This document shows, piece after piece, positions 1 through 64,000 of a DNA stretch of 64,000 nucleotides. Position 1 is the stretch's first letter. The number at the start of each line of letters is the position of its first letter. Where the stretch lies: the sequence record OR532817.1; one strand, given 5' to 3'. Made by a program: the position numbers and the translations under genes. Under the pieces are notes generated by a model, which made no database searches, was not told where the DNA came from, and was given only the letters and a program-made list of their open reading frames with translations.

Positions 1-5
1 AATGC

Positions 6-443
6 ATGTTAGGTGCATTGTTATTATCCAAAAGTTTAATACTAATGGAGTACAATAACAAAAGAGATATTTTAAATGCGAAGTACTACAATTCAAAAGT
101 CTCACAAGAGGTATATCATTTCTGTAAGTACTGTGTGAACAATCCATCAGATATAAGTTATTTTAATGAAAGTGGTAATTTAAGATACCAAAATCCTGTT
201 TTTGAATTTTATATCGAACATTATGATATGGGATTCAAATATTCATCACAATCTGATGTTGTATACTTTAAAGTTCAAAATAATTGGATGGAATTCAGTA
301 CTAACAAATATGACAAAATGTTATTGAGTTCAGTATTTTTCTGTTTATCAGAAAGAGAAAGAAATGAAAAAATTCTTTCCAATATACAAAATACAATAGA
401 TAGTAAATTGCGTTATCTTGCTATGTATAAGGAGACAAAATGA
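6..443 (+). CDS. hypothetical protein
   Basis: 145-aa ORF, ATGA overlap with next gene; start uncertain at window edge. Confidence 0.6.
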   Translation: MLGALLLSKSLILMEYNNKRDILNAKYYNSKVSQEVYHFCKYCVNNPSDISYFNESGNLRYQNPVFEFYIEHYDMGFKYSSQSDVVYFKVQNNWMEFSTNKYDKMLLSSVFFCLSERERNEKILSNIQNTIDSKLRYLAMYKETK

Positions 444-838
444 CAATTGATGATATTTACAGTACAATAAGGAATTTGGATAAGTACAAAAAAGTTTTTG
501 ATTCAATTAACCGTAACATTTTTTATGGTATTGGTACTTATGATATTATACAACTGGAATACGATCAGGAAGGAAAAAGTGGTATAAATTTCGTGTGTCC
601 ACGTGACAGTGAAAACAATTTCATGTATGTTGAAGTGAACGAAGATGGCATCAAATTTACAAAAATCTTCAAAGGTGGAATTGATTACGAAGAACTGGAT
701 TTGAATGAAGAAGATAGTTTCTTTCAACAAGATACTGTTATAAATCTTGGTTTTTCATTACAAGAGTACAGAGAAATGCATAAAGATTTTATGCGTTATT
801 ACAATGGCTTCCTCAAAGAATTAACGGTACATTTATGA
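440..838 (+). CDS. hypothetical protein
   Basis: 132 aa, AGGAG RBS, coupled to neighbours. Confidence 0.75.
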   Translation: MTIDDIYSTIRNLDKYKKVFDSINRNIFYGIGTYDIIQLEYDQEGKSGINFVCPRDSENNFMYVEVNEDGIKFTKIFKGGIDYEELDLNEEDSFFQQDTVINLGFSLQEYREMHKDFMRYYNGFLKELTVHL

Positions 839-1299
839 ATCTCAATACAAGTGAAATGTTCTTTAATGATGTAAAATCAAAATTTCTAAAAAATGATGGT
901 AGTGGTTTTGATGAAAAAATCAAAGAAGTAGTATTGCGTTGGAAAAATAGTCCAGTACTGAATAATATATGCCCTCGCTGGTCATGTCAAAGTCATGATT
1001 ATGATGATTTTAATACTTATTATTACATTATATTCTGTACCCAAAACGATGGTGCGGAATTTCTGTACAATAAAGTATTGAAAAAGCTAATCGAACTCAG
1101 TGCAAAGTACGGTGTGATGGATAATTGTTGGGAATACAAGGTAATCCAGTTAATGAACACAATTGATAATAATCACACACCCTTTGAACCACACGTAGAA
1201 ATTGCATGTAGAGTATTTGGGGATTATAATAAAATTTGTATTTTAGAAAAAGTATGGTTAGAATTACTAGAAGGTATTGAAAAAGAATATGGGCAATAA
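835..1299 (+). CDS. hypothetical protein
   Basis: 154 aa, ATGA overlap. Confidence 0.7.
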   Translation: MNLNTSEMFFNDVKSKFLKNDGSGFDEKIKEVVLRWKNSPVLNNICPRWSCQSHDYDDFNTYYYIIFCTQNDGAEFLYNKVLKKLIELSAKYGVMDNCWEYKVIQLMNTIDNNHTPFEPHVEIACRVFGDYNKICILEKVWLELLEGIEKEYGQ

Positions 1300-2533
1300 T
1301 AATTTTTTAGAACAAAATATAGTTAAACATCTTGCAGGTTCAAATGCATATGGTACTAATACCCCTGAAAGTGATGTTGATTACAGGGGTATTTTTTTAG
1401 CATCAAAAGAATATATCATGACTCCCTTTTATAATGTAAAAGAAGTCACTGATTCTTCAGAAGAAGATACAAAATTTTATGAATTGAATCAGTACATGAA
1501 ATTATATCTGGACGCTAATCCAAACATTCTCGAAAGTTTATGGGTAGATCCATCAGATATCGTTGATAGTACTGAATTTTATGATTATCTACGCAAACAC
1601 AATGCTGATTTACTAAGTTCACGAATTGCATTTACTTATACTGGTTATGCTTATAATCAGGTAACTCGTATGAAAAATCATCACGGTTGGATGGATAAAG
1701 AACGTACAGCAGAAAATAGATTAAATGAAATTATTTCTTTATATCCATATGTTATCACAAAAGAATGGATGTATGATACGTTTCCAGATTATCTGGTTGA
1801 ACGCGTATTAAAAGATGTAATCTTATCAAACATGAACATTTTAATTGATTTTGAAAAATTAATGCGTGATACTTCATTACAACTGGTTTCTATTGTTCCA
1901 CTGAAGCAATACCATTTTGTTAAATTGGTGCACAATTACAGTACTGAAAAAGTTCTTGATCGTGATTTCAATTTACTGAATTACAATAATGGTTATGAAT
2001 TAATTCACTACGGTGAAAATATTTTTGCTCTTGTAAAAAATAAAAATGAGAGTACAATTAATTCCGATGGTACATTGCGTTATTTCAATAAAGAACGTAG
2101 TACTGAAGAATTGAAAACTTATCCTGAACTTATCATCAAATTCAATAATAAAGAATGGACTGAAAATTCTGATAACAGAAAGAACTATCACAAATGGAAA
2201 AAAAATCGTAACACTAAGCGTTCTATTATGGAAATGCAATCAGGTTATGATCGAAAATTTGCAATGCATACTATCAGGTTATTGAACACCGCTGAAGAAG
2301 CGTTGGAAAGTGGTATTATTCATGTCAAACGCCCAGATGCACAATTTTTATTGGATATCAGAAATGGTAATTACACCTATGAAGAGATCATGGAAATGTA
2401 TAATACCAAACAACACAATATCCGAGAAGTTCTGTACAAAAAGTCAGTACTACCAAAGAAACCGAATATCAAATTAGCTACCAAGATTTTACTTGATATT
2501 CGTGAAATGCAATTTTATGGCAAAAAATCTTAA
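1289..2533 (+). CDS. Pol-beta-superfamily nucleotidyltransferase (RlaP/PF10127-like) with large central insertion
   Basis: GSNAYGTNTPESDVDYRGIF motif (GS..DxD); C-terminal KFAMHTIRLL...IRNG helical motif; ATG 1289 preferred to upstream TTG. Confidence 0.8.
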   Translation: MGNNNFLEQNIVKHLAGSNAYGTNTPESDVDYRGIFLASKEYIMTPFYNVKEVTDSSEEDTKFYELNQYMKLYLDANPNILESLWVDPSDIVDSTEFYDYLRKHNADLLSSRIAFTYTGYAYNQVTRMKNHHGWMDKERTAENRLNEIISLYPYVITKEWMYDTFPDYLVERVLKDVILSNMNILIDFEKLMRDTSLQLVSIVPLKQYHFVKLVHNYSTEKVLDRDFNLLNYNNGYELIHYGENIFALVKNKNESTINSDGTLRYFNKERSTEELKTYPELIIKFNNKEWTENSDNRKNYHKWKKNRNTKRSIMEMQSGYDRKFAMHTIRLLNTAEEALESGIIHVKRPDAQFLLDIRNGNYTYEEIMEMYNTKQHNIREVLYKKSVLPKKPNIKLATKILLDIREMQFYGKKS

Positions 2534-2550
2534 CACAAAGAGGTAATTAT

Positions 2551-3015
2551 ATGAGCAACTATTCAGAGTATAAACAAAAAGAAATTGAATTGAAAGAAAT
2601 GGTGAAAACCGTTGGCAAAGAACTCATTCAAGAAATGTACGAACAGTTTTTTGAAAAGTACCCAGAAGTTAAATTTGTTAGTACCGTTGGTTATATCCCA
2701 GGGTTTAATGATGGTGATGCTTGTGAATTCACATCTGATACTGAATTTAGTGGAGATTATGTTGAAAATCTTAGCGAAGAAAGTTTAGAAGATATGGTCA
2801 TTGCATTTGGTGGTGAACCAGGTGAAGATGATTTGTTTGATCTTGATACTGCGGAAAATCCAAACTGGAATTATCAACAATACAACGCCGCCGGGAAAGA
2901 TGTGGACGTCGACCTGCTGGAAAAAGTATATGGTTATGATTGGATTGTTGTTGCTTATAAAGGTATTGATGGAACAGTTTCAATTGTTCAAGAGGATTAT
3001 GATTGTGGATATTAA
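2551..3015 (+). CDS. acidic phage protein, paralog A
   Basis: GAGG RBS; GYIPGFNDGDACEF motif; ends EDYDCGY. Confidence 0.8.
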   Translation: MSNYSEYKQKEIELKEMVKTVGKELIQEMYEQFFEKYPEVKFVSTVGYIPGFNDGDACEFTSDTEFSGDYVENLSEESLEDMVIAFGGEPGEDDLFDLDTAENPNWNYQQYNAAGKDVDVDLLEKVYGYDWIVVAYKGIDGTVSIVQEDYDCGY

Positions 3016-3469
3016 TGCTATCGTTGAAAACATGAATGCAGAAATTGAAGAAGTACGTCAAAAATATGTAACTATATTTAATGATGATTTCAATATCGTA
3101 TTACAAGCTATTAAAGACAAATATCCCGCACTCGAAGTTGTTTACATTCGTGCATGGACACCTCATTGGAACGACGGCGAAGAATGTAAACACAACATGT
3201 CTGTACACGTAGATAACAATGGTAAGTATACTGATATCGAAGAGTTTTTTGAATGTACTGAACGTAATTTTGATTGGGATGAAGCACCTGATTGTATTAA
3301 GAATGTCAACAAAGGCATAAGTACTAAAATGTCGAAAGAGATTGTCGGTTTATTCGAAGCTTATCAGGATTCATTTGAAAGTATTCTAGGCACGAACTGG
3401 AAAATGACAATTGATTTTACACAAGAACGACCCATTATGGTTAAAGAAGATTATGAGTGTGGATATTAA
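3005..3469 (+). CDS. acidic phage protein, paralog B
   Basis: AWTPHWNDGEECKH motif; ends EDYECGY; GTG 3005 with GAGGA 8 nt upstream (track start 2801 is an extension). Confidence 0.75.
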   Translation: MDINAIVENMNAEIEEVRQKYVTIFNDDFNIVLQAIKDKYPALEVVYIRAWTPHWNDGEECKHNMSVHVDNNGKYTDIEEFFECTERNFDWDEAPDCIKNVNKGISTKMSKEIVGLFEAYQDSFESILGTNWKMTIDFTQERPIMVKEDYECGY

Positions 3470-4016
3470 TATCCTTAATCCAGTAGGTAGCATTAGTACT
3501 GATCTATTTCAGTTTAATGCTCCTACTGGAGTATTACCTGATTTAGTACTTAAATATGAAAATCCAAATAAGGTTCTTGATTTAGCTCATCCAGATTTAG
3601 TACCTTTGATTGAACGTATGCTCAAAGAAATTAAGAAATTTGATTCGAGAGATTGTGTTATTGATTATAAAGTACGTTCATTGAAAACTGGTGATCCTGG
3701 TAGTACTATTCCAGGATTCCATATTGATTGTTGTAATGATATTCATGATGATTTTGAACCAGAGACTCATTTGATTTATAGTACAGTACAAGGTACAGCA
3801 TTTGCTGTTAATCCAATCGATGTATCTCGTTATAATTCAGTTCATGAAGTACTTAAAAATGAATCTATAACCGAAGTCATTGGTAGTACTGAATCAGTTC
3901 ATAGATTTACATCTAAGGTATTGCACCGATGCCCAATAATTGAACACGATTGTCAACGAATTTTAATTCGTGTAACATCTGGATTTAAAGATAGATTAAA
4001 GAGAAACAGAAAATGA
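3459..4016 (+). CDS. putative 2OG-Fe(II) oxygenase
   Basis: HxD (GFHIDC), distal His (LHRCP), terminal RILIRVT; start 3453 or 3459. Confidence 0.6.
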   Translation: MDINILNPVGSISTDLFQFNAPTGVLPDLVLKYENPNKVLDLAHPDLVPLIERMLKEIKKFDSRDCVIDYKVRSLKTGDPGSTIPGFHIDCCNDIHDDFEPETHLIYSTVQGTAFAVNPIDVSRYNSVHEVLKNESITEVIGSTESVHRFTSKVLHRCPIIEHDCQRILIRVTSGFKDRLKRNRK

Positions 4017-4420
4017 ATAAATCAATTAAAGATGCTCTTAATATTCTGGAACGAGAGTATTATAAAATCAAAGGTTCAATCAACCAATACAAAGTTCGAG
4101 AAGAAATTCTCAATAGAGTAGAGGAAATGAAAAACCGTTCCATTGAAAAACAAAATATCCAAAATAATACAACAAAAGAAACAGTATTGAATGCTTTTGT
4201 CAAAATTATAGAGGATACTGGATATTCAGAAACAGATTATGAAATCACAGAAAACATGACTGTACTGAATATTAAAGAAAAATTCAATCTGGATACATGG
4301 GACTGGTTTGATATTATGGTTGAAGTATCAGAACTTTTCGATGTACACTTAGATGATGAATTGTATCTGGATGATGTAGTACTGAAAGATGTTATTGAAG
4401 AAATTTTGAAAGATATTTAA
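4013..4420 (+). CDS. acyl-carrier-protein-like protein (Thr at the Ser attachment position)
   Basis: C-terminal ~80 aa align by eye to ACP: KII..EIT....NLDTWDWFDIMVEVSELFDVHLDDE. Confidence 0.6.
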   Translation: MNKSIKDALNILEREYYKIKGSINQYKVREEILNRVEEMKNRSIEKQNIQNNTTKETVLNAFVKIIEDTGYSETDYEITENMTVLNIKEKFNLDTWDWFDIMVEVSELFDVHLDDELYLDDVVLKDVIEEILKDI

Positions 4421-4430
4421 AAATAGACCC

Positions 4431-4436
4431 TAAATA
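4431..4436 (+). promoter_or_regulatory. late promoter core TAAATA upstream of spanins
   Basis: same hexamer precedes most structural genes in the window. Confidence 0.55.
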
Positions 4437-4458
4437 TTCATATATCTTTGAAGGAGAT

Positions 4459-4833
4459 GTGAATATGTTAGAGTTTATAATCAAGGTTGTATCCGACAAT
4501 TATAAACCCATCCTGATTGTATTGGCGATGGGTTTTTGTGTTTTCGGAGGATGGAAAGCAAATACTTATTACACCGGTTATCAATTAAGTATTTCCCAAA
4601 AAATTGAGAAAAAAGTAGATGATGCTATTGATAAGCTACAACAAGAAAGTGCAAAAAATTTAGTTGAAACACAGAAGACAATTAAAGAGAATGCAACTAA
4701 AATTGTGGAAACCAAAGTACCAGTTATTATAGAGAAAAAAGTATACCAAAATGTCTGTTTAGATGAAGATGGTCTTCAGGTACTAAAAGAATTAAAACTT
4801 AATTCAACTGAAGGAAGGAGAAAACTACAATGA
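4459..4833 (+). CDS. i-spanin (Rz-like)
   Basis: single N-terminal TM helix followed by coiled coil; overlaps lipoprotein gene. Confidence 0.75.
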   Translation: MNMLEFIIKVVSDNYKPILIVLAMGFCVFGGWKANTYYTGYQLSISQKIEKKVDDAIDKLQQESAKNLVETQKTIKENATKIVETKVPVIIEKKVYQNVCLDEDGLQVLKELKLNSTEGRRKLQ

Positions 4834-5147
4834 AATTTAAATTAAAATATGTTGTACTACTGTTGGTATTATCTTTAATTGGATGCAATAGTACTGCTCC
4901 AGTTGAGATGAAACAACAAGTACAACAGGAAGTACTATTGGAACGCTGTTCAGAAGACACCCCATTACCAACACAAAAAACTGTTGACAAAGACGGAAAT
5001 GTTGGATATGATGGTAAAGAAGTCTTTAGGGTATTACGTGAATGGGATGCAATTTATTTTGATTGTGCGAGCCGTTTAGATGCACTCATTACGTATCTAC
5101 AAAAAACCCAAGATCCTAATTTTAAGGTAACTATAAAGGATAAGTAA
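4830..5147 (+). CDS. o-spanin lipoprotein (Rz1-like)
   Basis: signal peptide with lipobox LIGC; LLERC...PLP and CASRLDAL motif. Confidence 0.8.
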   Translation: MKFKLKYVVLLLVLSLIGCNSTAPVEMKQQVQQEVLLERCSEDTPLPTQKTVDKDGNVGYDGKEVFRVLREWDAIYFDCASRLDALITYLQKTQDPNFKVTIKDK

Positions 5148-5731
5148 TGAATAAGTACAAAGTACTAAAAGTATTACCTTTATCATTTTTAAATTCTTTG
5201 GATCATAATGATATCAAATCAAAAATAGGACATTGTGGTGATTCAAATTTTTTATACTATCCACAAAAAGTAAAAACATTTTCCAAGAATCACAAATGTG
5301 TAGCATGTGGAATCGAAGCCACTGAAGTACGAATTGAATACATGCAAGAGTGTTCTCATGCAATCTATAGCAAACCACACATCAATGTATATGCGGTGCT
5401 TGGTAATTATTCAGTACTAATGACAGTTGATCACGATATACTTGCATCCGAAGGCGGAAATGATTTAGACAATAATTTTAGTACCATGTGTTCCAAATGT
5501 AATAACAAAAGAGGATCAAAGTATAAGACACTCAAATCATTCCTCAAATCAATTGAGGGGCGAGATCTCTTGAAGGAATACATGTCTGTAACTAAAAAGA
5601 CAAAAACCAGTCAGAACGCGGCTGAGCAGCGTTTACACGATGAATTTTGGGAATTAGGACATAACTGGCATTACAGAGAATATCTTCGTTATCTGAAGGC
5701 CAAAAATAAAGATAAAAAGAAAGGGGCATAA
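5147..5731 (+). CDS. HNH endonuclease family protein
   Basis: CVAC...TVDH...GGND..NN..TMCSKCNNKRG. Confidence 0.8.
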   Translation: MNKYKVLKVLPLSFLNSLDHNDIKSKIGHCGDSNFLYYPQKVKTFSKNHKCVACGIEATEVRIEYMQECSHAIYSKPHINVYAVLGNYSVLMTVDHDILASEGGNDLDNNFSTMCSKCNNKRGSKYKTLKSFLKSIEGRDLLKEYMSVTKKTKTSQNAAEQRLHDEFWELGHNWHYREYLRYLKAKNKDKKKGA

Positions 5732-5749
5732 GTTGCCCCTTTACTTTTA
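5720..5749 (+). terminator. intrinsic terminator
   Basis: AAAGGGGCA/TGCCCCTTT stem then T-rich tail. Confidence 0.7.
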
Positions 5750-5804
5750 TCCAAATTTTGTTATAATATAAAAATCAAAATTTAATAAAAATGAGAAAAG
5801 AGTA

Positions 5805-6200
5805 ATGCTCAAAGAGTTTGATTACAGTACTTTAGAAGTTATTTCAGCAGTTAAAAATATCAACAATTTAGATGATGAAAAAACAGTACTAATCACGATC
5901 ACATTTGTAAACAAAGAAGATTCATATAAACATTTATCTGGTATAGAAGAAATGTTGCATAAACTTCATTTAGAAGAAAATCGGAAATATATTAAACTAC
6001 AATGTAGTTATACCCAAAATTTGAACAATTTTTTAATTATAAATAAAACAATTAAAATTAGTTTCAATGATCCAAAACAAAAATACTGTACTAAATCGTT
6101 CAACGAAGATCAGGTTAGTAATGAATTACTAATGGATATTGAATTTATCAATGATTTCTTCGATTCATGTGATAATGAATTGAAAAAAGTATATTTGTAA
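5805..6200 (+). CDS. hypothetical protein
   Basis: 131-aa ORF. Confidence 0.65.
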   Translation: MLKEFDYSTLEVISAVKNINNLDDEKTVLITITFVNKEDSYKHLSGIEEMLHKLHLEENRKYIKLQCSYTQNLNNFLIINKTIKISFNDPKQKYCTKSFNEDQVSNELLMDIEFINDFFDSCDNELKKVYL

Positions 6201-6208
6201 AAAATATT

Positions 6209-6238
6209 TTGAACAATTTTAGTGCTATGTAATATAAT
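6209..6238 (+). promoter_or_regulatory. sigma70-like promoter facing the non-coding island
   Basis: TTGAAC-N18-TATAAT; same TTGAAC...TATAAT pair occurs near 35395. Confidence 0.5.
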
Positions 6239-6244
6239 GTAATT

Positions 6245-6715
6245 AATATCAATTCGAGGACTTAATTCTGCTGAATATCTATGTATATGGATATACAAAT
6301 AAACTTGAACCTATCGAAAACGTAGAGAGGCATTTGAGTGGTTCAGCAGCACGCCTTGCAGGTAGTACCGGTGATAAAATCCTAAGTGTGAGCTTACAAA
6401 GCACAGCCTTAATTCCAGAGAGTGCACAGGAGTCATCGCAACACGGCAAGTAAAAGAGAGCTATAGACATATGCTTTCCATCACTATAATCCTCTGGTGA
6501 TGATAGATTGAACCTACGGAAAGTATTTTCCATAATTGTTAAGGGAGAATACACCAAAATTTTTACAGTAGAGTTGCGTCTAAATTTTGTTGTGTTCAAG
6601 TACTGAGATTGGTCAAATAGTCTCAGTACTTAGTGTGTGGCATGATACCTACTAAACCACATGACCTCTGCATAAGACTGAGATAGGGAGAAACCGGGCA
6701 GACCGCTTCCGTTCT
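6245..6715 (+). ncRNA. candidate large structured non-coding RNA, family unrecognised
   Basis: no + strand ORF; ~41% GC (hand count 6301-6720); several stems with G-U pairs (6479-6502, 6547-6597, 6598-6631); upstream promoter. Confidence 0.55.
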
Positions 6716-6759
6716 TTATAAAAAAGAAATTCTCAATTTGACAGTTTCGAAGACTACCA

Positions 6760-6990
6760 TCTTCAAGAAATAAAAAAAAACGTTTTAAGAACGCGTTCCG
6801 TTGCGTTTTTTTCTTCCCTCCCTGTGGGGGGGGATATAAAGTTTCTCTCCCAAACCTCTTCAAGAAATAAAAAGAAAACAAACAACAATTACCGAATAAA
6901 ATCAAATAACACAGAACGAAACGAAGTGAAGTGAATGAGTTATTTGATTTTATGAGAGATGTGTTGAACGAAGTGAAATACATCTCGACA
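6760..6990. repeat. inverted/direct repeat cluster (origin-like)
   Basis: 15-bp perfect IR 6896-6910/6939-6953; 10-bp IR 6956-6965/6977-6986; CTTCAAGAAATAAAAA direct repeat near 6761 and 6858. Confidence 0.65.
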
Positions 6991-7228
6991 TGGATAAACA
7001 ATATATACTTAATTAACAAAAACAAATCAAGTATTGAAATAAATTACAAAGGAATTACATCTAATGAATACTAAAAAAAGAACCAGATATAATTAAGTAC
7101 TGAAATTAGTTAATTAGTTCTCTTTTTAAATAACCGACTTTAAATTAGTCAAATCAAATAAATTCATTTAATAAAAAGAAATAAATATTTCTATAAATCC
7201 CATACCAAAGGACTTATAGGAGAAATTA

Positions 7229-7678
7229 ATGCAAGAACCACAAGACATAAATCAGTTACGCAATTTAATGGATTTCATAGTACAATCAGAAGAAGACGAG
7301 TCCTATGATCAATTACTGCTTACATTTATTGAAAATAGTTTATTCCTTGAATCAGCAGCACACAACTGGCATTTACAAAGCAAACACTACACAAAGCACT
7401 TACAATTAGATGAGTTATACAAAGAACTACCGGAGTTCATTGATGCATTCATTGAAGGAATTATGGAATCAAGAGGGCCATTAGTAATTGGTACTGGAAA
7501 TAGTTACCAATTCACTGAAATAAGTACTTGTATTCCTACTTTAGAAGAGTATCTAAATCAATGTGAAGCAATTCACCAGATGCTTGAATCTAATGAGGAC
7601 TATGGAAGTACTAACACGCTTGAAGACATAATGAGTTTTATTGATGGTGTTCTTTATAAATTAAAACATTTACAATAA
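7229..7678 (+). CDS. ferritin/Dps-like four-helix-bundle protein
   Basis: HNWHLQ...HLQLDELY...IDAFIE resembles Dps HW..H..LDE.Y; AGGAG RBS; TAAATA at 7182. Confidence 0.65.
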   Translation: MQEPQDINQLRNLMDFIVQSEEDESYDQLLLTFIENSLFLESAAHNWHLQSKHYTKHLQLDELYKELPEFIDAFIEGIMESRGPLVIGTGNSYQFTEISTCIPTLEEYLNQCEAIHQMLESNEDYGSTNTLEDIMSFIDGVLYKLKHLQ

Positions 7679-7683
7679 TAAAT

Positions 7684-7713
7684 GGAGAGTCAAAAGACTC
7701 TCCTTTCTTTTTG
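7684..7713 (+). terminator. intrinsic terminator
   Basis: GGAGAGTC/GACTCTCC + T tract. Confidence 0.8.
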
Positions 7714-7724
7714 GATAAAATAAT

Positions 7725-8114
7725 ATGAAAATACGAATTCATGAACACACAACTTATAATTATTGTGAAGATTGTGGTCTAGAATCTTCATTGATATATT
7801 CTGTATCTGGTGATGGAATCTCATTTAAACAGGGAGACCATGCATATTGTTATGGAACTGAATCTGGTGATATAGAAAATGTTCTAAAAGAGCTATTTTT
7901 ACGCTTGCAATCCAAGGGAATTGATGCTAGACTGCCGGAGATGATAGATAATGACATTGATTCAGTACTGAATTATGAATCTTTTATCCACTCGGGTTAT
8001 GTTCATTATCTAAACACATTAGGTGTGAATGTGAAACTAACATACAGTACTGAAGACTATCCAGATATGGATGGCGGTGATTATATTGATATTGAGGATG
8101 ATTATGAAAGCTAA
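7725..8114 (+). CDS. hypothetical protein (Cys/His-rich N-terminus)
   Basis: 129 aa, CEDC motif. Confidence 0.7.
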   Translation: MKIRIHEHTTYNYCEDCGLESSLIYSVSGDGISFKQGDHAYCYGTESGDIENVLKELFLRLQSKGIDARLPEMIDNDIDSVLNYESFIHSGYVHYLNTLGVNVKLTYSTEDYPDMDGGDYIDIEDDYES

Positions 8115-8664
8115 AGAACTTGCAGAATTACTAATGAAAAATCCAGAACAAGAAGTATATCTGGAAGAAACACATTTTGATGATTGGGACTGTTCTGTAT
8201 TTTATACACCATCTGAAGTTGTAGATGTTCAAATTACTCCAAGTGGAGTTTTTATTAAACACAATCCGATGCATAGTCAGGATACAACTTCATTAAAGAT
8301 GCCAAGTACTGAACCAGTTGTTGGTTCACTTAACGTGTTGTTAAATTGCCCAATTGGTGATCTACGATATTTCAGTAATGATACATCCAATCACGTTCAA
8401 TCATTTGTTGAAGAATTATTGAATTATGGTTCAATTAGTGATTATGTTTCATTTATGGATGCACACATTCGTTTTGTGTTACAACAAACTGACGTTGATT
8501 ACAGTACAGAAGATGGTTATTTTATAGGTCCAGATGATTGTACTTATGAAGTACTAACAAGTTATGATCCAAACACTTGGGAACCTTTTTATACTGAAAT
8601 GACCTACCAAGAAGTTTTTGATTATGCACACAAAAACTTTGAAATTAAGAAATACGAGGAATAA
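8104..8664 (+). CDS. hypothetical protein
   Basis: GAGGA RBS, ATG 8104. Confidence 0.7.
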   Translation: MKAKELAELLMKNPEQEVYLEETHFDDWDCSVFYTPSEVVDVQITPSGVFIKHNPMHSQDTTSLKMPSTEPVVGSLNVLLNCPIGDLRYFSNDTSNHVQSFVEELLNYGSISDYVSFMDAHIRFVLQQTDVDYSTEDGYFIGPDDCTYEVLTSYDPNTWEPFYTEMTYQEVFDYAHKNFEIKKYEE

Positions 8665-8665
8665 A

Positions 8666-9157
8666 ATGTATACTGTCATTTTTGTATCACAGCCGTATAA
8701 TAATGAAGATGATTATTCAAAAAGTACAGATGGTTCTATGACAATCAAGAATTCAAATTCTAAATTGGAAACAAATAAGATTATCCATGAATTGATTAAT
8801 GATTATTATCATAAAGATAATAAAAACACAGCATTAAATCATTTAGATTATGGTGATTTCGGCCTGGTCGTATTACTTGATGGTTGTGTACTACAAGAAT
8901 TCAACATGAATGATATTGATTACAGTGATTTAACATCACCAATTGAAAGTAATGATTATTTTGACATTAAATCAATTGATAATAAAGTTTCCAAGAACAT
9001 TAGTAATATTAACAAATTTGCTCATGATTTTAAACTTGAAGAATCTAATACTTTCAGAAAGTTGAAAACTATGTATCAGGCGATTGAAATGGAGAAAAAT
9101 GAACGTAGACAACTTAGTATTTTATTAGAAAAATATCCAGATATGGGTGGTAGATAA
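8666..9157 (+). CDS. hypothetical protein
   Basis: GAGGA RBS, ATG 8666. Confidence 0.7.
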   Translation: MYTVIFVSQPYNNEDDYSKSTDGSMTIKNSNSKLETNKIIHELINDYYHKDNKNTALNHLDYGDFGLVVLLDGCVLQEFNMNDIDYSDLTSPIESNDYFDIKSIDNKVSKNISNINKFAHDFKLEESNTFRKLKTMYQAIEMEKNERRQLSILLEKYPDMGGR

Positions 9158-9483
9158 TGGCATTGCGTTCAATAAAGAAATATAGTGCAACAACAAAAAT
9201 AATCAAAAAAGATGGTTATGATTTAGTACTGAAACCTGAATATCAATATATTAAAAATGCTATCTTTGAAATGCCATATGGTGCTAAAAGAAGAAAAATC
9301 ATTCTTGATATGTTAAGAGAAGGTGTTGAATTTAAAGTTAATGGTATGCATGATATCCAAACCAAAAATGATCCAGATATTAAACGATTGTTGAAGTACA
9401 AGAAAATAGAGATGTTTAATGTGAGAAGTGGTTCATGGTCAGATCGTAGTAAACATACATACTTGAGGATTAAAAATGGATGA
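9157..9483 (+). CDS. hypothetical basic protein
   Basis: TAATG overlap. Confidence 0.7.
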   Translation: MALRSIKKYSATTKIIKKDGYDLVLKPEYQYIKNAIFEMPYGAKRRKIILDMLREGVEFKVNGMHDIQTKNDPDIKRLLKYKKIEMFNVRSGSWSDRSKHTYLRIKNG

Positions 9484-9646
9484 AAATGATTTAGAAATTT
9501 TATTAGCAAATAATCTAAGTATTGAGATCAGTACTGAAGATGATTCATATGAAGATATGGATGGTAATATTGTTCGTAGAAATCATATTACTGTTAGTAT
9601 TTTATACAAAGGAAAGGTAATAAGCACAGATATTAGTACTGTATAA
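9476..9646 (+). CDS. small hypothetical protein (56 aa, not in ORF track)
   Basis: GAGGA RBS; MDENDLEILL...STV fills the gap before tdk. Confidence 0.6.
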   Translation: MDENDLEILLANNLSIEISTEDDSYEDMDGNIVRRNHITVSILYKGKVISTDISTV

Positions 9647-9657
9647 GGAAATACAAA

Positions 9658-10233
9658 ATGAGTTTGATTTATACTTTCGCGGTGATGGCCGCGGGGAAAA
9701 GTACACAATTATTACAAAATGCATATAATCACAGTAAAAATGGATTAAAAGTACTGTATTATACAAGTTCATTAGATAATAGATATGGTGTAGGAAAAAT
9801 AACATCAAGAATTGGTATTAATGCAAATGCTGAGGTGATTCCAAAAGATGATCTTTCAGTACTGCAAAATATCATCGAACTGTTGAAGAAAGACGACTAC
9901 GTTGCTATTTTTGTTGATGAGTGTCAATTTTTGAATTCAAAACAGGTTGACTTTTTGAGTGATATCGTTGATAATTACGAAATAGACATTTATTGCTACG
10001 GCATTAAAACTGACTTTGAAGGTAAGTTGTTTGAAGGTAGCAAACGATTAATAGAAATTGCTGATTCCGTTAAAGAATTGGAAAATTTATGTGAAAATCA
10101 TAAATGTAAAAACTTAGCTATTATGAATGCTCGTATAGTCGATAGTACTGAACAAGTACTGATCGGCGGTTCTGAAGCATACAAAAGTTTATGTAGAAAG
10201 TGTTATAAAAATCATATTTCTAAAAGAGGTTAA
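9658..10233 (+). CDS. tdk: thymidine kinase
   Basis: AVMAAGKST Walker A, FVDECQF, YGIKTDF, IGGSEAYKSLCRKC. Confidence 0.95.
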   Translation: MSLIYTFAVMAAGKSTQLLQNAYNHSKNGLKVLYYTSSLDNRYGVGKITSRIGINANAEVIPKDDLSVLQNIIELLKKDDYVAIFVDECQFLNSKQVDFLSDIVDNYEIDIYCYGIKTDFEGKLFEGSKRLIEIADSVKELENLCENHKCKNLAIMNARIVDSTEQVLIGGSEAYKSLCRKCYKNHISKRG

Positions 10234-19086: not shown

Positions 19087-19125
19087 AAAAGTACTAATAT
19101 GGGTTTCTGTATTAGTACTTTTATT
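19087..19125 (+). terminator. terminator-like hairpin with AGTACT in both arms
   Basis: AAAAGTACTAATA/TATTAGTACTTTT. Confidence 0.65.
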
Positions 19126-43587: not shown

Positions 43588-43600
43588 TAAGAGGTATATA

Positions 43601-44713: not shown

Positions 44714-44720
44714 CAAAAAT

Positions 44721-44748
44721 AAAAAAGGAGCCGATTGGCTCCTTTTTT
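44721..44748. terminator. bidirectional terminator
   Basis: AAAAAAGGAGCC/GGCTCCTTTTTT. Confidence 0.85.
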
Positions 44749-44749
44749 G

Positions 44750-45223: not shown

Positions 45224-45235
45224 AGAAACTCCTTG

Positions 45236-46561: not shown

Positions 46562-46563
46562 TG

Positions 46564-48027: not shown

Positions 48028-48082
48028 TTGAATTCTCCAAATGCATTTTTTATATAGTATTTAGAGAAGATAAAAAAAAGAG

Positions 48083-48112
48083 TTGACATTGCAATTTAAT
48101 TTCTGATATAAT
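48083..48112 (+). promoter_or_regulatory. sigma70 early promoter of clpA-like gene
   Basis: TTGACA-N18-TATAAT with extended -10 TG. Confidence 0.8.
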
Positions 48113-48159
48113 GTAATCATAGTTCAATACAAAAGAGACATTTTACAAAAGGAAAATCA

Positions 48160-50469
48160 ATGAATCTACAAAAACTATTTAAAGTAAGCGATGATCTGGC
48201 AACTTCTCTTGGTCATACATATCTTACTATTGACCATATTAGTGCTACACTTCTTGAAGTTGATAGTATTGTAGAACTATTCAATACCATGAATATTGAT
48301 ACAAATAAACTTCACAGTCGTGTGATGAATTTTCTGAAAAGTACTGAATATCCAAATCAACCGGCTAGTATGTCAGCTAATGGGACTAACAGTAGTTCTT
48401 TGTTGGTAAATCGCGTATTCAATGAACTGTCAAAAAAATCAGTTATTGAACAACTTAAACGTGATGATTTTACAATTGATTCATACTTTGTACTATTTGA
48501 ATGCTTGTCTTTCCCTAATACAGCACTAGAAGCTGCGTTAAAAGAAGAAGGCGTGTCTCGCACTGAAGCAGCACGTGCATTACAAAAACATGTGGCGAAA
48601 ATCGATAGTTCCATCAATCTACAAAGTATTGCTGAAGATCCTAATTCATCAGATAAGAAAGCGACGGCGGGACAAATGAATGCAATTAAACAAAAAACTC
48701 TAGAAGATTTTACTGTAAACCTGACTAAACTTGCACAGGAAGGTAAACTTGACCCAATGATCGGTCGCCAAAAAGAACTTCAATCACTAATTGAAGTAAT
48801 GGCACGTAAAAACAAAAAGAATGCTATTCTTACTGGTGATGCAGGAGTCGGTAAAACTCAGATCGTCGATGGTTTTGCACAAGCCATTGCTGATGGTGAC
48901 GTACCTGACTATCTGAAAGGTGTTGAGGTATTATCTCTTAACGTTTCTGCTGTAACTGCTGGTACAAAATACCGTGGTGAATTCGAAGAACGTATGGAAG
49001 GTATTATTAAAGAACTTAAAAAACGAGAAAATGTAATTTTGTTCATTGATGAAGTACATATTATGATGGGTGCTGGTGGTAGCAGTACTGGATCTATGGA
49101 TATGAGCAATATCATGAAACCAGCACTTTCACGTGGTGATATTCGTGTTATCGGTGCAACAACTTATGAGGAATATCGCCAGAACATTGAAAAAGATGCT
49201 GCATTTTCCCGCCGATTCACCAAAATTGATGTAGTTGAACCTAGTATTAACGAAACACGTGAAATTATTAATGGACTGAAAGGTACTTATGAAAAATATC
49301 ACAACGTAACATTCAGTACTGAAACAATTAACTCAATTATTAATCTGAGTTCTAAATTTTTACAAAATAAAAAGTTTCCAGATAAAGCAATTGATCTGAT
49401 GGATAGTGCTGCTGCTAAAATTCGTTCAGAAAAACGTTCAGATCTAAAAGTTACGGTACGTGATATTGAAGAAGTTGTGTCCAGAATCACAAACCTTGAT
49501 ATTAGTGTTATTTCTTGTACTGAAAGTGAACGCATGAATAATCTACCCGATGTTCTACGTTCGCGTGTATTTGGTCAAGATGAAGCAATCGAAAAATTGG
49601 TCGATAACGTTATGGTTGCACGTGCTGGGCTACGTGATAAATCAAGTGTTCAGGGTGCTTTCATGTTTGTTGGACCATCTGGTACTGGCAAAACTGAAAT
49701 CACAAAAGCACTTGCTGAAGCAATGGGTTCTGAGCTAATTCGTTTTGATATGTCAGAGTTTTCGCAAGACCACACTGTATCTAAACTTATTGGTTCACCT
49801 CCTGGATATGTAGGACATGAAACAGGCAATGGTCAGCTTCTTGATAAAGTTGAACAATTCCCTAATGCAGTACTTCTACTGGATGAAATTGAAAAAGCAC
49901 ATCCAAAAGTACTGCTGACATTCCTACAAGTATTGGATGAAGGGCGTTTGACTGGTTCACAAGGAAAAACAGTTTACTTTAATAATATTACTGTTATTAT
50001 GACTACAAACCTTGGAGCAGCAGATTCCAATAAACGTAGTATCGGTGTAAGTACAGTGGATTCTGCACAAGAAAAAGCTATTAAAGCATTTTTACCACCA
50101 GAATTCATCAATCGCATTGATAGTATTGTTAAATTCAATGAACTATCATCAGAAGCAATTGATAGTGTAATTGACAAGTTTATGGGGGCATTGCGTGAAC
50201 AAGTTAAAGAACGTGGAATTGAAGTGGTACTGACCAAACGTGCACGAGAATATCTTGCAGAGAATGGTGTTCAGAACGGCATGGGTGCTCGTCCAATGAA
50301 ACGTTTGATTGAGCAATGCATTCGTGTACCTTTGGCAAAAGAAATGCTTCTAGGCTCTCTGGTGAACGGTGGTAAGGTAACGTTTGATGTGATTGGTGGT
50401 AAGATTGCAATTAAACAAAAAGTTAAAAAATCCACAAAGGAAATTGATTCAGCAGAATTAGAGGCGTAA
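48160..50469 (+). CDS. clpA: ClpA-like Hsp100 ATPase
   Basis: two AAA modules (GDAGVGKT, FIDEVH; GPSGTGKT, LLDEIEKAH), FDMSEF, LIGSPPGYVG, GARP; no M-domain. Confidence 0.93.
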   Translation: MNLQKLFKVSDDLATSLGHTYLTIDHISATLLEVDSIVELFNTMNIDTNKLHSRVMNFLKSTEYPNQPASMSANGTNSSSLLVNRVFNELSKKSVIEQLKRDDFTIDSYFVLFECLSFPNTALEAALKEEGVSRTEAARALQKHVAKIDSSINLQSIAEDPNSSDKKATAGQMNAIKQKTLEDFTVNLTKLAQEGKLDPMIGRQKELQSLIEVMARKNKKNAILTGDAGVGKTQIVDGFAQAIADGDVPDYLKGVEVLSLNVSAVTAGTKYRGEFEERMEGIIKELKKRENVILFIDEVHIMMGAGGSSTGSMDMSNIMKPALSRGDIRVIGATTYEEYRQNIEKDAAFSRRFTKIDVVEPSINETREIINGLKGTYEKYHNVTFSTETINSIINLSSKFLQNKKFPDKAIDLMDSAAAKIRSEKRSDLKVTVRDIEEVVSRITNLDISVISCTESERMNNLPDVLRSRVFGQDEAIEKLVDNVMVARAGLRDKSSVQGAFMFVGPSGTGKTEITKALAEAMGSELIRFDMSEFSQDHTVSKLIGSPPGYVGHETGNGQLLDKVEQFPNAVLLLDEIEKAHPKVLLTFLQVLDEGRLTGSQGKTVYFNNITVIMTTNLGAADSNKRSIGVSTVDSAQEKAIKAFLPPEFINRIDSIVKFNELSSEAIDSVIDKFMGALREQVKERGIEVVLTKRAREYLAENGVQNGMGARPMKRLIEQCIRVPLAKEMLLGSLVNGGKVTFDVIGGKIAIKQKVKKSTKEIDSAELEA

Positions 50470-60550: not shown

Positions 60551-60552
60551 AA

Positions 60553-63500
60553 TTATGAACCAATATTGATATTAGTCTTAGCAAGGGATTTGACAATTTG
60601 TACATTATCAACTGTTGCAGTACTAATAAAAATCTGATCACTTTGAGATGGTATTTCAAATAAAGAACCAAATTTAGAATCTGGATTTTGTGATACAATA
60701 ACGATTGTACTAATATACCTACCTAAATTACTTTGAATATAAGTACACAAATCAGTATAATAGAAACTTTCACCAAAGTCCCAGTTATCTATACTGAAGT
60801 ATTCATTACAAAGAGAAATAACATTTTGTCTTATTTCATCATCACTCATAGTAGTATTTGGTAGTGGTACCACTTTGAAATCAGCCCTGTATGATTCATC
60901 TGCACTATCACCAAATAAAGGAAGATATCTTGCACTGTGCCAAATTAAACTATCACTGATTACACTCCTTAACTCAACATCGCTAAATGTTTGTTTAAGT
61001 TCAACTGAAGTTGGTGGTTTAGGAATAGTACCACTTGCACCATTCTTAATCCACAATTGTACTTCATCATGATAAGATGTTGTTAATACATACATATCAA
61101 TTAGGTTAGTTTTACTTGGATCTATGCGATTATCATCTGGTGCATAATGTTTCCAGTGGAAATATACACCGCTTCTTGCACCAACTTTAACATCGTATTG
61201 AGTACTTACATCATCATATCCATAATAACTGAGTTTTTGGTTTTCATCAACATCAGATGAGCCGTTATTCATAATAGCTCTATAAAACGCAGTTTCTGGT
61301 GTAATAGCCGAAGTATCATCAGATGAAGTCATATTTGTAATTAAATTATTAAGACGATCATTGTTATTTCCCACATTTTGTTCAATGAAGTAATAATTAT
61401 CATTGTACGCAAATCCAATAACAAAACCTGAACCTTTATTGAACAAATCACTCAATAAGGTACTTCTGATTTCCACGTTTCTGGTAAATTCTTTTCGTTT
61501 ATATGCATTGGTTTCTGCTAATGCATCAGAATTAGTATATTTCCATGAAGAATCTAATAAAGTAAAATCATCATCTGGTAAATTTAATGCTTCTACTGTG
61601 AAATCTTCATTTTGCTGGAATATCAAAATTGCACCATATTTTTTGAGATCAGTTGATTCCCAGTCCGGTACTATATTACTGAATTGATTTGGCTCAAGTG
61701 GGATACCATTGGTATCTATTTTAGTACTACTGATAACTACACGAGAACCATCTATATAACCATTATCCTGTTCAATATTATCAATAATCTGGAACTGGAT
61801 ATCACTAGACAGACCCAAATTACTGGTATCAGTAGTATTTGAACTTAAAATTGTTATTTTATCGTTCTGTACTGTACCACTGTTGATATCATTAATTTTA
61901 TTTGGGTTAACAAAATAAAAACGAACTTTAGAACCACCAACGAAGATATATTCAATACCATTTGATTCAAAACTCCATGATTCAGATGTGTACTTGATAT
62001 TAACCATTACTGGAACAGTAATACCCTGATATGAGATTTCTTCTTTATCAGTACTGATTTCAACTGGAACCCAGCGTGAAATAGATGTATCATAAATGAG
62101 TACAAAATCCGTTTTTTTATCCAGTTCAGCGGAAATAGATTGAATTTCGACTGAATTGAAACTAATTCGGTAAGGTTTGATATATTCCTGAATATACATA
62201 GATGTAGGAACAGTAGTACTTAAAATATAATACCCATTCTCAAGGACATTAGTGATACTACTCCATATCGTCGTGTTTCCATCAGTGAATAAAATTAAAG
62301 TACCAACTTGGTAATCATACAAGGTCTTTCCTGTACTATCAAGTATTTTACCATATGTATTGTTTGTATAATTTGAATTATATTCAGGAGTCCAGATATT
62401 TCTCAATTCAAGTGTGACAGTATTACTTGGATATGATTGATATTTCTGTATAACTGCATTTTCACCAATTAATGGTTGGATACTATCAACTACTATACTT
62501 GCATTTGGTTTAGATGTTGGCAATGATACTGTATTTTTATAAGTAACTTTATCTTTATACATACTACCATCATCACTGAATACATCAGTGTTTTGATATT
62601 TCCCGGTTGGGTCATTAATGTCAATGAATCGTGACTGACCACTATATATTCGGTTAATAGCTTTTGCTTTTTGAACCAAATTACCCTGACTTAATGGTGC
62701 AATATCATAATCCTCACCATTGACAAATCGGTTTTGGGTGTAATATAATTGTGGAGCACGAGCTTTAATCTGTTCCAGAGTTTCAGCACTTTGTGCACGA
62801 CTACTTTCGTACTGTAATGTAAATTTAACTTCAAGGATACTCTGTTCGTAGTTTGATTGTGCATTAGTTCTGTACTGATATTTTATACTTTTATTTTGGA
62901 TATCAGTTGTTTTAATACTGTATGTCATCCCATTACTAACACGATACCACGTTCTGAATGTTCCACGTGGAACAACACCACTTCTTGAATCAGGAAACTT
63001 AATACTAATTTGATCATTATCACGCGTGGTTACAGCGAAAATAGTTTGTTTTTTTCTGTCTACACTGTTATAAGCAACACTTTCCATTGCAGGAACTTTA
63101 GTCCATTTGGTTCTTACTAAACCGTCCTGATTAATTTCTTGTACCCAAACATCTGTTTCATTAATATTATTAACATTAATATCCTGTAAACGATTTTCAA
63201 TACTCACACTATAATCGAAGTCTTGTTTAGAAAGTGTGCCTTGTTTGAAATAAACGAAAAATCCAGTATTGATTGAATTAAAACCATTACCATCATTCTG
63301 ATAAATGATATATTTTTGTTCTTGTGGTTCAGGATGACGTTCATCGACACCAGAAGAGCTAATATCAGGGTTTACTACTTCAAATTTCATACTTTCACCA
63401 TTTACGTTTGCACTAAATGGGATAGCTGGTGATTGCATTTGATTAGTATTCATTTTATACAAATGAGTACTCAGCCCATTCACATTAGTTTTCTTAACTG

Positions 63501-64000
63501 GATTACCAAACTGGTTGGTACTCACAAAAACATTGTTCATAACCAGAATAAAGTTCTCGTACCAGTTAGGATCAGTAGGGTCATTCCATCTAATCGTTTT
63601 ATCTTTAAGTGATTTATTAAAACTATTTCGTACATCCTGGTTTGTTTTTATTTCAGTGACTTTAGCTAATGCACGACCTGGATATGAACGTCTTGGAGCA
63701 TAAGAGATCATTTTAGCAAGTTTAAGTACCGAAGCCCTGCGGGTTGCAGTATCCATAAAGTTTTCACGAGTGTTCATGTCCATACGAAATGCAAGGTTTT
63801 GACCAAGCATGGCAATCGTGTCCAGAATGAATAAAAATTCATCATTTGCAATCCAGTCATTGAATGTATCAGGATAGTTAGTACTAAGATAGTCAACCAT
63901 ACTTTGACGTATACTATCGAAATCATATGAATTCAATGAAATTTGATAAAAACTTTCATATATTTGCGACCAGTCTTCACCAGCGTATAAATTAGATTGT
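60553..64000 (-). CDS. baseplate wedge protein (gp6-like), 5' end just outside window
   Basis: YDFDSIRQSMVDYL, E+FMDTATRRASVLKLAK..SY.P, AETLEQIKARAP..Y.TQNR.V..EDY; frame stays open to the edge (QSNLYAGEDW). Confidence 0.88.
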   Translation of the reverse strand, partial: QSNLYAGEDWSQIYESFYQISLNSYDFDSIRQSMVDYLSTNYPDTFNDWIANDEFLFILDTIAMLGQNLAFRMDMNTRENFMDTATRRASVLKLAKMISYAPRRSYPGRALAKVTEIKTNQDVRNSFNKSLKDKTIRWNDPTDPNWYENFILVMNNVFVSTNQFGNPVKKTNVNGLSTHLYKMNTNQMQSPAIPFSANVNGESMKFEVVNPDISSSGVDERHPEPQEQKYIIYQNDGNGFNSINTGFFVYFKQGTLSKQDFDYSVSIENRLQDINVNNINETDVWVQEINQDGLVRTKWTKVPAMESVAYNSVDRKKQTIFAVTTRDNDQISIKFPDSRSGVVPRGTFRTWYRVSNGMTYSIKTTDIQNKSIKYQYRTNAQSNYEQSILEVKFTLQYESSRAQSAETLEQIKARAPQLYYTQNRFVNGEDYDIAPLSQGNLVQKAKAINRIYSGQSRFIDINDPTGKYQNTDVFSDDGSMYKDKVTYKNTVSLPTSKPNASIVVDSIQPLIGENAVIQKYQSYPSNTVTLELRNIWTPEYNSNYTNNTYGKILDSTGKTLYDYQVGTLILFTDGNTTIWSSITNVLENGYYILSTTVPTSMYIQEYIKPYRISFNSVEIQSISAELDKKTDFVLIYDTSISRWVPVEISTDKEEISYQGITVPVMVNIKYTSESWSFESNGIEYIFVGGSKVRFYFVNPNKINDINSGTVQNDKITILSSNTTDTSNLGLSSDIQFQIIDNIEQDNGYIDGSRVVISSTKIDTNGIPLEPNQFSNIVPDWESTDLKKYGAILIFQQNEDFTVEALNLPDDDFTLLDSSWKYTNSDALAETNAYKRKEFTRNVEIRSTLLSDLFNKGSGFVIGFAYNDNYYFIEQNVGNNNDRLNNLITNMTSSDDTSAITPETAFYRAIMNNGSSDVDENQKLSYYGYDDVSTQYDVKVGARSGVYFHWKHYAPDDNRIDPSKTNLIDMYVLTTSYHDEVQLWIKNGASGTIPKPPTSVELKQTFSDVELRSVISDSLIWHSARYLPLFGDSADESYRADFKVVPLPNTTMSDDEIRQNVISLCNEYFSIDNWDFGESFYYTDLCTYIQSNLGRYISTIVIVSQNPDSKFGSLFEIPSQSDQIFISTATVDNVQIVKSLAKTNINIGS

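Follow-up and report, generated by a model that had tools for sequence, protein, structure and literature searches.

Several over-represented oligomers, namely Chi, the FtsK-orienting polar sequences (KOPS), the uptake sequences, and the highly iterated palindrome HIP1, have each led to a DNA-processing machine that reads the genome. Here we describe the iteration of the palindromic hexamer AGTACT in a 64,000-nucleotide stretch of DNA, analysed over its full length and referred to as the window, that is 100% identical to genome positions 248001–312000 of Klebsiella phage RCIP0023 (OR532817.1). RCIP0023 is a RaK2-like jumbo myovirus with a 350-kb genome, and RaK2, K64-1, Muenster, and KP13-7 are ∼98% identical relatives. 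AGTACT iteration is a trait of the genera Alcyoneusvirus, Asteriusvirus, and Eneladusvirus (the RaK2/121Q/fHe-Yen9-04 clade of ∼350-kb enterobacterial jumbo phages, hereafter the clade). HIP1 (GCGATCGC) of cyanobacteria is likewise a short palindrome far over-represented in coding and non-coding DNA and in related genomes, and both words co-occur with orphan methyltransferases. A preliminary description of the window had drawn this analogy, which is apt as a description: AGTACT is a palindrome enriched 12-fold genome-wide, is in excess in all reading frames and in non-coding DNA, and is common to the relatives. AGTACT differs from HIP1 in belonging to a phage clade and not to a cellular lineage, in its A+T-rich and unrelated sequence, and in occurring also at fixed positions in promoters and beside a terminal-repeat boundary.

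Other described systems share some of these properties. At the pac site of phage P1, arrays of the hexamer TGATCA/G flank the terminase cut and are active only when methylated by Dam; the hexamer is not known to be enriched genome-wide. In the clade phages, too, a single palindromic hexamer recurs on either side of the genome-end boundary, and a Dam-family methyltransferase is encoded, but these phages have 20-kb direct terminal repeats instead of headful pac packaging. Chi and the uptake sequences of Pasteurellaceae (uptake signal sequence, USS) and Neisseria (DNA uptake sequence, DUS) resemble AGTACT as dispersed intragenic oligomers that bias codon and peptide usage and whose density is kept while individual sites turn over. 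They mark 'self' DNA for a DNA-processing machine, are asymmetric and orientation-dependent, and have known readers (RecBCD and the uptake receptor), whereas AGTACT is palindromic. The SlmA sites of E. coli (GTGAGTACTCAC) contain an identical central AGTACT and are palindromic, bound by a dimeric helix-turn-helix protein, and scattered over the genome, but the phage sites favour other outer bases than the ones SlmA needs. Cluster A mycobacteriophages carry about 30 stoperators, which are asymmetric and intergenic. In both the stoperators and the GATC clusters bound by SeqA, as for AGTACT, one short site is reused genome-wide, at promoters and away from them, with phased clusters acting cooperatively; AGTACT differs in having about 950 sites that are mostly intragenic, and GATC shows no genome-wide enrichment.

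AGTACT occurs 148 times in the window, compared with 15.5 ± 3.7 in 100 dinucleotide-preserving shuffles, the largest of which gave 25. In the complete RCIP0023 genome, assembled from retrieved pieces and used for all genome-wide statistics, 954 sites are present where 79 are expected (12-fold). The sites and their strongest extended form are distributed in the window as follows.

Positions 1–64000, unstranded: AGTACT sites, 148 in number (2.3 per kb), dispersed in genes of both strands and in intergenic DNA.
Positions 953–960 (first copy) to 62049–62056 (last copy), unstranded: the extended palindrome CAGTACTG, 33 copies in the window.

Successive 10-kb bins contain 35, 25, 19, 16, 21, and 25 AGTACT sites, and the final 4 kb contains 7. 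The preliminary description had estimated at least 33 in positions 1–10000 and about 20 in 40001–50000 at a G+C content of ∼31%; these estimates agree with the 35 and 21 sites counted and with a G+C content of 33.1% in the window and 31.8% in the entire genome. The excess it reported therefore stands, but it missed the longer motif CAGTACTG, the spread of the trait through the clade, and the densest sites, which lie outside the window in a hot region at genome positions 120–150 kb (72, 74, and 49 sites per 10 kb).

The excess belongs to this particular word. Among window hexamers AGTACT ranks first under Markov models of order 0 to 2, and the GTAC core is present 481 times compared with about 190 expected. 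AGTACT accounts for 148 copies among the sixteen NGTACN words, with the runner-up at 54. The 180 letter permutations of AGTACT have a median count of 20, the next highest being shifted versions that overlap the motif itself. Only a Markov model of fourth order reproduces the excess, accounting for 134 of the 148 sites, and its pentamers AGTAC and GTACT already hold most of the motif.

The fit of the fourth-order model is one of two observations that favour the excess being a by-product of codon usage, dipeptide usage, or dinucleotide bias; the other is that the usage of AGT, ACT, GTA, and TAC codons raises the window expectation from about 15 to about 50. We consider this explanation to have a negligible probability. 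With synonymous codons shuffled within genes, so that protein sequence (and thereby dipeptides) and codon usage are all fixed, the window coding sequence contains 139 AGTACT sites compared with 50.1 ± 6.1 (z = 14.6, rank 1 among hexamers). The same shuffle applied to the genome minus 118–150 kb gives 666 coding sites compared with 210 (z = 35, rank 1), and a stricter shuffle that also fixes dinucleotides at codon junctions gives an expectation of 299 (z = 18.8). As the preliminary description had noted, sites occur within genes of both strands: 85 window sites are read AGT-ACT, 40 are xxA-GTA-CTx, and 14 are xAG-TAC-Txx. Genome-wide enrichment over the synonymous-shuffle null is 2.9-, 4.9-, and 3.4-fold in the respective frames. 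Intergenic DNA of the window contains 9 sites in 3.8 kb, a density equal to that of coding DNA, and the 30.3 kb of non-coding DNA outside the hot region contains 84 sites where 6.9 are expected (12-fold). The flanks of the sites are symmetric, which likewise argues against a compositional origin. The three shuffling nulls, the frame analysis, and the non-coding density together exclude a codon, dipeptide, or dinucleotide artefact. Codon or dipeptide usage and a comparable excess among permuted hexamers had been named beforehand as the grounds on which the enrichment might be dismissed, and it persists against both.

The motif also leaves an imprint on the proteome. Ser-Thr is its most over-represented dipeptide (observed/expected 1.70), while the reverse dipeptide, Thr-Ser, is at 0.99; AGT-ACT encodes 377 of the 771 Ser-Thr pairs compared with 118 expected. 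Val-Leu (1.52) and Gln-Tyr (1.44) are also over-represented. The directionality of the Ser-Thr bias indicates that it results from the motif and does not give rise to it. AGTACT is thus a genuine iterated palindrome at the DNA level, enriched about 10-fold whatever the frame or coding status, and its excess in every frame and in non-coding DNA, together with the strong dipeptide bias, indicates that the responsible force acts on DNA and is strong enough to alter proteins. The suggestion in the preliminary description that the enrichment implies selection or a generating mechanism is borne out by these controls and by the maintenance of density across genera described below.

Site positions show little large-scale order. 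AGTACT density is flat around gene starts and stops, which rules out a positional bias toward either. Spacing in the window is essentially Poisson (coefficient of variation 0.87, compared with 0.99 ± 0.08 for random placement), which rules out regular spacing or selection for even coverage. Density is uniform, with gaps never beyond about 2.9 kb, and close pairs (<30 bp) are depleted outside the regulatory region (15 compared with 30.5, p = 0.001).

The motif extends beyond the hexamer. C is favoured at −1 and G at +1, symmetrically, and the doubly flanked form CAGTACTG is the strongest, with its 33 window copies comparing with 0.55 ± 0.78 expected and 248 copies present genome-wide. Relative to the synonymous-shuffle null, CAGTACTG is enriched about 10-fold in each reading frame genome-wide, sites with one C/G flank about 3.5-fold, and sites with no C/G flank 1.4- to 2.2-fold, such that the effects of the two sides multiply. 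An unbiased 8-mer scan yielded only windows onto TTCAGTACTGAA, a 12-mer with 31 copies, and the motif optimum in RCIP0023 is accordingly CAGTACTG tapering into TTCAGTACTGAA. A weak symmetric A/T signal is also present 9 bp to each side of the core. The −1 preference varies by genus, being C in the Klebsiella and E. coli phages and A in the Yersinia phage, with G disfavoured in all.

Enrichment of a palindrome is exceptional in this genome. The preliminary description had remarked that phages usually avoid palindromes, and RCIP0023 strongly avoids palindromic hexamers apart from AGTACT: over 350 kb the 64 such words have a median observed/expected ratio of 0.54, and AGTACT alone exceeds 2. Thirteen palindromic hexamers have zero copies in the whole genome compared with 11–80 expected (AGCGCT, AGGCCT, CAGCTG, CCTAGG, CGATCG, CGTACG, CTGCAG, CTTAAG [0 compared with 80], GAGCTC, GCATGC, TCCGGA, TCGCGA, and TGCGCA). 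Enrichment of one word in an otherwise palindrome-purging genome suggests that some protein probably reads AGTACT on double-stranded DNA. Non-palindromic words show other departures from expectation. GATGTC/GACATC is absent from both strands of the window (29 ± 4.8 expected) and occurs once in coding sense strands genome-wide compared with 34; a type IIS or type III restriction system of the host, or the phage's own nuclease, may target it. Genome-wide, the sense strand of genes strongly avoids TAAATA (104 compared with 289) and AAAAAA (631 compared with 979), and avoidance of the former agrees with the proposal that ATAAATA is a late-promoter motif in two related phages, CBB and GAP32. For the E. 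coli Chi octamer GCTGGTGG, the + strand of the genome has 16 copies and the − strand has 5, where base frequencies predict an estimated <1 per strand; this excess is probably helped by GGT-rich codon usage.

The trait has a sharp phylogenetic boundary. In 50 kb each of Escherichia phage A4 (Asteriusvirus) and Yersinia phage fHe-Yen9-04 (Eneladusvirus), AGTACT is present 101 times compared with 15.3 and 111 times compared with 12.7, respectively. The Stenotrophomonas jumbo phage RAS14 (8 compared with 11.5) and the Klebsiella T4-like phage RCIP0008 (4 compared with 3.4) show no enrichment. Among IMG/VR contigs, AGTACT is a top hexamer, at 5- to 8-fold, in all of those whose tail sheath is ≥62% identical, and it is not enriched in those at ≤47% identity, with one ambiguous exception. 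Comparison across relatives, which the preliminary description had called for, thus places the enrichment in three genera and, apart from this exception, finds it absent at or below 47% tail-sheath identity. The exceptional contig, L033 (IMGVR_UViG_3300027985_000659; 38% tail-sheath identity, 33.8% G+C), has a 5-fold AGTACT excess consisting nearly entirely of in-frame Ser-Thr; its sites look like Ser-Thr pairs in structural genes, and their flanks differ from the clade motif.

Within the clade, a density of about 2–2.7 AGTACT sites per kb is maintained across genera while single positions turn over. In orthologous genes, sites are shared at 18 of 64 aligned positions with A4 and at 7 of 58 with fHe-Yen9-04, which is typical of frequent hexamers, and the totals in those genes are equal between RCIP0023 and A4 and likewise between RCIP0023 and fHe-Yen9-04. 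Where the encoded amino acids are identical in A4, 16 of 17 AGTACT sites are kept compared with a median of 50% for other words, in what is a small sample.

Some sites do occupy fixed positions, and these lie in the hot region. Conserved early promoters of a strong sigma-70 type, with the form AGTACTTGACA ... CAGTACTGTATAAT, have two AGTACT copies 20 bp apart that abut their −35 and −10 elements. The pattern AGTACTTG-N12-AGTACTGNATAAT is found in several genera, its matches in IMG/VR being confined to this clade, and 28 promoters from about 10 contigs have aAAaAGTACTTGCAtTa...ttcAGTACTGTATAAT in common. A conserved 5′ hairpin and ribosome-binding site follow 3′ of these promoters. The CBB paper described these promoters as an RpoD-like class bearing an UP-like element and did not mention AGTACT. 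Two inter-site distances are conspicuous, 20 bp with 21 pairs and 10 bp with 6, and a non-coding array shows a 10-bp phase.

The hot region coincides with the 20-kb direct terminal repeat predicted by PhageTerm in Muenster, whose position 1 corresponds to RCIP0023 genome position 123701; repeat boundaries were taken from others' PhageTerm prediction and restriction digests. The densest AGTACT cluster of the genome, 6 sites in 126 bp at genome positions 123563–123688, ends 13 bp upstream of the homologue of the Muenster repeat start, directly 5′ of a CCACTA|AGT junction. Relative to the boundary, sites in RCIP0023 and Muenster are located 138, 98, 58, 38, 28, and 18 bp upstream and 47 and 80 bp downstream. 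Restriction digests have confirmed the termini of phage fEgEco12 (PMC13070987), which has an identical CCACTA|AGT junction with AGTACT at −98, −48, and −27 and two more sites downstream, such that positions at about −98 and −28 are common to two genera. Two further features were observed in this region. A 1.8-kb non-coding region at the repeat boundary (genome 123450–125230) contains several near-perfect Fur-box-like repeats (GAGAATGATAATGATTCTCATT) that overlap promoter-like elements beside AGTACT sites, an arrangement suggestive of early transcription, or of small RNAs, under iron control. An 18-bp perfect palindrome, GGAATCAGTACTGATTCC, is present in two copies (genome 125702–125719 and 135842–135859), with one copy in the 5′ leader of an 83-amino-acid early gene just 3′ of a double-AGTACT promoter, and could be a high-affinity operator or an RNA hairpin.

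We put at about even the chance that AGTACT is the recognition site of a clade-encoded, two-fold symmetric protein that reads double-stranded DNA, either a binder or the Dam-family methyltransferase. One clade protein would bind the boundary and promoter arrays cooperatively, thereby setting the genome end or starting packaging and controlling the early promoters. About 750 isolated intragenic copies would be kept by very weak additive selection and would hold the factor on phage DNA for self-marking, organisation, or protection, while accidental AGTACT clusters would be selected against. A more specific form of this proposal, which we advance tentatively, is that AGTACT is a genome-wide 'self' tag: one protein system would set the repeat boundary, gate the early promoters, and be kept on the DNA by those weakly selected copies at a cost to proteins. 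Such a system could be a binder, possibly coupled to adenine methylation. The phased boundary arrays of two genera and the fixed early-promoter positions lend indirect support to the hypothesis of a DNA-organising or packaging protein offered in the preliminary description.

Several observations weigh against a symmetric reader of this kind. On the terminal branches of four Alcyoneusvirus genomes, 17 AGTACT losses were counted compared with 12.5 expected if neutral, and 5 gains compared with 2.4; other words are at about 0.7 of expectation. No purifying selection on individual sites is therefore seen among these close relatives, and selection per site must be extremely weak or episodic; near-neutrality in the short term with density held in the long term fits either very weak additive selection or an episodic drive. 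The benefit of the isolated intragenic copies is entirely inferred, and a sharp hexamer core with genus-dependent flanks looks more like the specificity of an enzyme than like an operator. The conservation of AGTACT within promoter matches arises because the search pattern fixed both AGTACT positions, and the RCIP0023 terminus was placed by homology. The candidate readers, an H-NS/StpA-like protein, the product of an unannotated gene upstream of the large terminase subunit, and the Dam-family methyltransferase, are leads only.

The H-NS/StpA-like protein (166 amino acids; genome 129553–130053) is encoded by an early gene inside the terminal repeat, has an H-NS/StpA-like N-terminal oligomerisation domain and a C-terminal half without an assignment. 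Its known occurrences are confined to clade phages of Klebsiella, Escherichia, and Salmonella. That domain was the sole lead when 20 early-region proteins and the 226-amino-acid protein encoded upstream of the large terminase subunit (RaK2 101037–101717) were scanned against Pfam; no helix-turn-helix regulator was detected among them. The search for a methyltransferase advocated in the preliminary description identified a single recognisable one that is conserved in the three genera, a 172-amino-acid Dam-family protein (PF05869; genome 180646–181164) whose gene lies beside a cytidylyltransferase gene in a syntenic arrangement. RCIP0023 lacks a homologue of g080, the additional methyltransferase of fHe-Yen9-04, and a second RaK2 methyltransferase, gp194 (PMC3622015), was not located. 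RCIP0023 also encodes a full-length Mom-family protein (genome 33808–34392; PF25680, E = 6e-37) that is most closely related to proteins of Vibrio phages such as ICP1. Its gene looks horizontally acquired because within the clade only Alcyoneusvirus has it. Mom-like adenine modification was ruled out, since a protein confined to Alcyoneusvirus cannot account for a clade-wide trait.

The window contains four other features that bear on AGTACT or lie among its sites.

Positions 6597–6632, + strand: hairpin with AGTACT in each arm (6599 and 6625), 14-bp stem, −18.7 kcal/mol.
Positions 19087–19122, + strand: intrinsic-terminator-like hairpin, each arm bearing one AGTACT (19090 and 19114), with a T run after it, 16-bp stem, −16.8 kcal/mol.
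Positions 19141–21144, + strand: Hef-like homing endonuclease gene, 667 amino acids, Pfam DUF7487 plus a C-terminal restriction-endonuclease-like domain.
Positions 37828–38856, + strand: intron-like insertion of 1029 bp in the thymidylate synthase gene, seen as an alignment break relative to RaK2.

Both hairpins had been picked out in the preliminary description. The first lies within a 1-kb segment (6201–7228) that has no annotated gene in RCIP0023 and in which RaK2 and Muenster annotate small opposite-strand open reading frames. The second is located 3′ of the head-tail connector gene, and phage Muenster has a terminator annotated in the homologous sequence. An Rfam scan of the window, including the 6597–6632 hairpin and the thymidylate synthase insertion, found no family at the gathering score, and thus no group I intron in the insertion. 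The Hef-like gene separates the head-tail connector gene from the dNMP kinase gene, an insertion seen only in Alcyoneusvirus; it is absent at this locus in A4 and fHe-Yen9-04, which are equally enriched in AGTACT, and paralogues are present elsewhere in Asteriusvirus. RCIP0023 has three Hef-like homing endonuclease genes, and the family is mobile, with 3–12 copies in several unrelated phage groups. The thymidylate synthase insertion carries an 'intron-associated endonuclease' gene (37935–38678) and one AGTACT/CAGTACTG site at 38806; it is missing from RaK2 and Muenster, and the KP13-7 thyA annotation is longer.

The most substantial of the other explanations, though we think it probably incorrect, is that AGTACT or its GTAC core is a methylation mark, a methyltransferase target having also been among the hypotheses of the preliminary description. 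The orphan Dam-family N6-adenine methyltransferase would protect the palindrome from restriction, and the hemimethylated or unmethylated states that follow replication would time early promoters and terminus cleavage, like Dam at P1 pac and at oriC with SeqA. This account overlaps with the proposal of a symmetric reader because the methyltransferase would itself be that reader, or one of two. It draws on the synteny of the PF05869 gene and its cytidylyltransferase neighbour in all three genera, on the strict hexamer core with flanks that vary by genus, and on the hexamer arrays on either side of the repeat boundary, which resemble the P1 pac site. The tolerance of 954 AGTACT sites where other palindromic hexamers are purged also suggests that the sites are protected. 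However, PF05869 proteins are widespread in phages (1730 records), and characterised members are, as far as is known, GATC-specific. Protection would account for tolerance but not for a 10-fold enrichment that alters proteins, and it cannot extend to every GTAC, since CGTACG has zero copies. Digestion results point in both directions: RaK2 DNA was stated, as data not shown, to resist methylation-sensitive enzymes (PMC3622015), whereas ten enzymes cut fEgEco12 DNA normally (PMC13070987). A molecular drive, in which sequence-specific bias in repair or gene conversion turns near-matches into AGTACT with no benefit per site, is unlikely. An example would be very short patch-like repair of T:G mismatches by a Vsr-like domain, and a note in the Muenster record reports an HHpred match to Vsr for the Hef-like endonuclease of the window. 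Consistent with a drive, positions are random (Poisson) and turn over, loss rates look neutral, and AGTATT/AATACT are the sole depleted transition neighbours (455 compared with 514, or 0.89). Nevertheless, these precursors are reduced by only 11% while the product is increased 3.2-fold (10-fold for the 8-mer), which disfavours the single-base form of the repair loop envisaged in the preliminary description, and a simple flux model calculates that a bias at one position is capped at about 2.9-fold even with precursors fully depleted. At least 8 positions are biased when the flanks are included, 5 gains do not offset 17 losses, and the fixed positions at promoters and at the repeat boundary are left unexplained. 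The Hef-like/Vsr-like endonuclease was judged an unlikely driver of such repair, being mobile, common in other phages, and absent at this locus in enriched relatives, and single-base drive being insufficient.

Two further accounts invoke readers of other kinds. Sites for a replication or topology enzyme, needed every few hundred bp, would explain a uniform density that is irrespective of orientation and frame, with gaps of no more than about 2.9 kb, and the clade encodes both a gp61/gp41-like primase-helicase and a T4-type gp39/gp52-like topoisomerase II. The enzyme could be, for example, a primase with an unusually long recognition word or a T4-type topoisomerase II cleaving preferentially at AGTACT, and known primases read three bases while type II topoisomerases have a weak consensus. 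With no regular spacing, and with the promoter positions and boundary arrays unexplained, we regard this as quite improbable. It is very improbable that the reader is a host protein that the phage recruits or titrates, foremost SlmA, whose site GTGAGTACTCAC has the AGTACT core (PMC3020112). All named enriched isolates examined infect Enterobacterales, as a host reader would predict; the enriched IMG/VR contigs are without a host label. SlmA needs G, T, and a purine at positions 1–3 of its site (PMC3020112), whereas the phage sites favour T, T, and C, with G at −1 in just 6%, and only 2 sites in 350 kb fit GTNAGTACTNAC. The flank preferences moreover vary between phage genera. The wrong flanks, the two fitting sites, and the lack of a SlmA homologue in the phage rule out SlmA as the reader.

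No comparable over-represented word has been described for phages in the literature searched, and within that literature the AGTACT finding is apparently new. If the 'self'-tag proposal is true, AGTACT would represent the first viral counterpart to be described of HIP- or Chi-like architecture-imparting sequences, and its reader would be a previously undescribed one. The clade that AGTACT defines includes phage-therapy candidates against Klebsiella and E. coli. The motif provides a handle on how the 20-kb terminal repeats are cut, on how early promoters are controlled, and on the tolerance of about 950 copies of a single palindrome in a 32% G+C genome purged of restriction sites.

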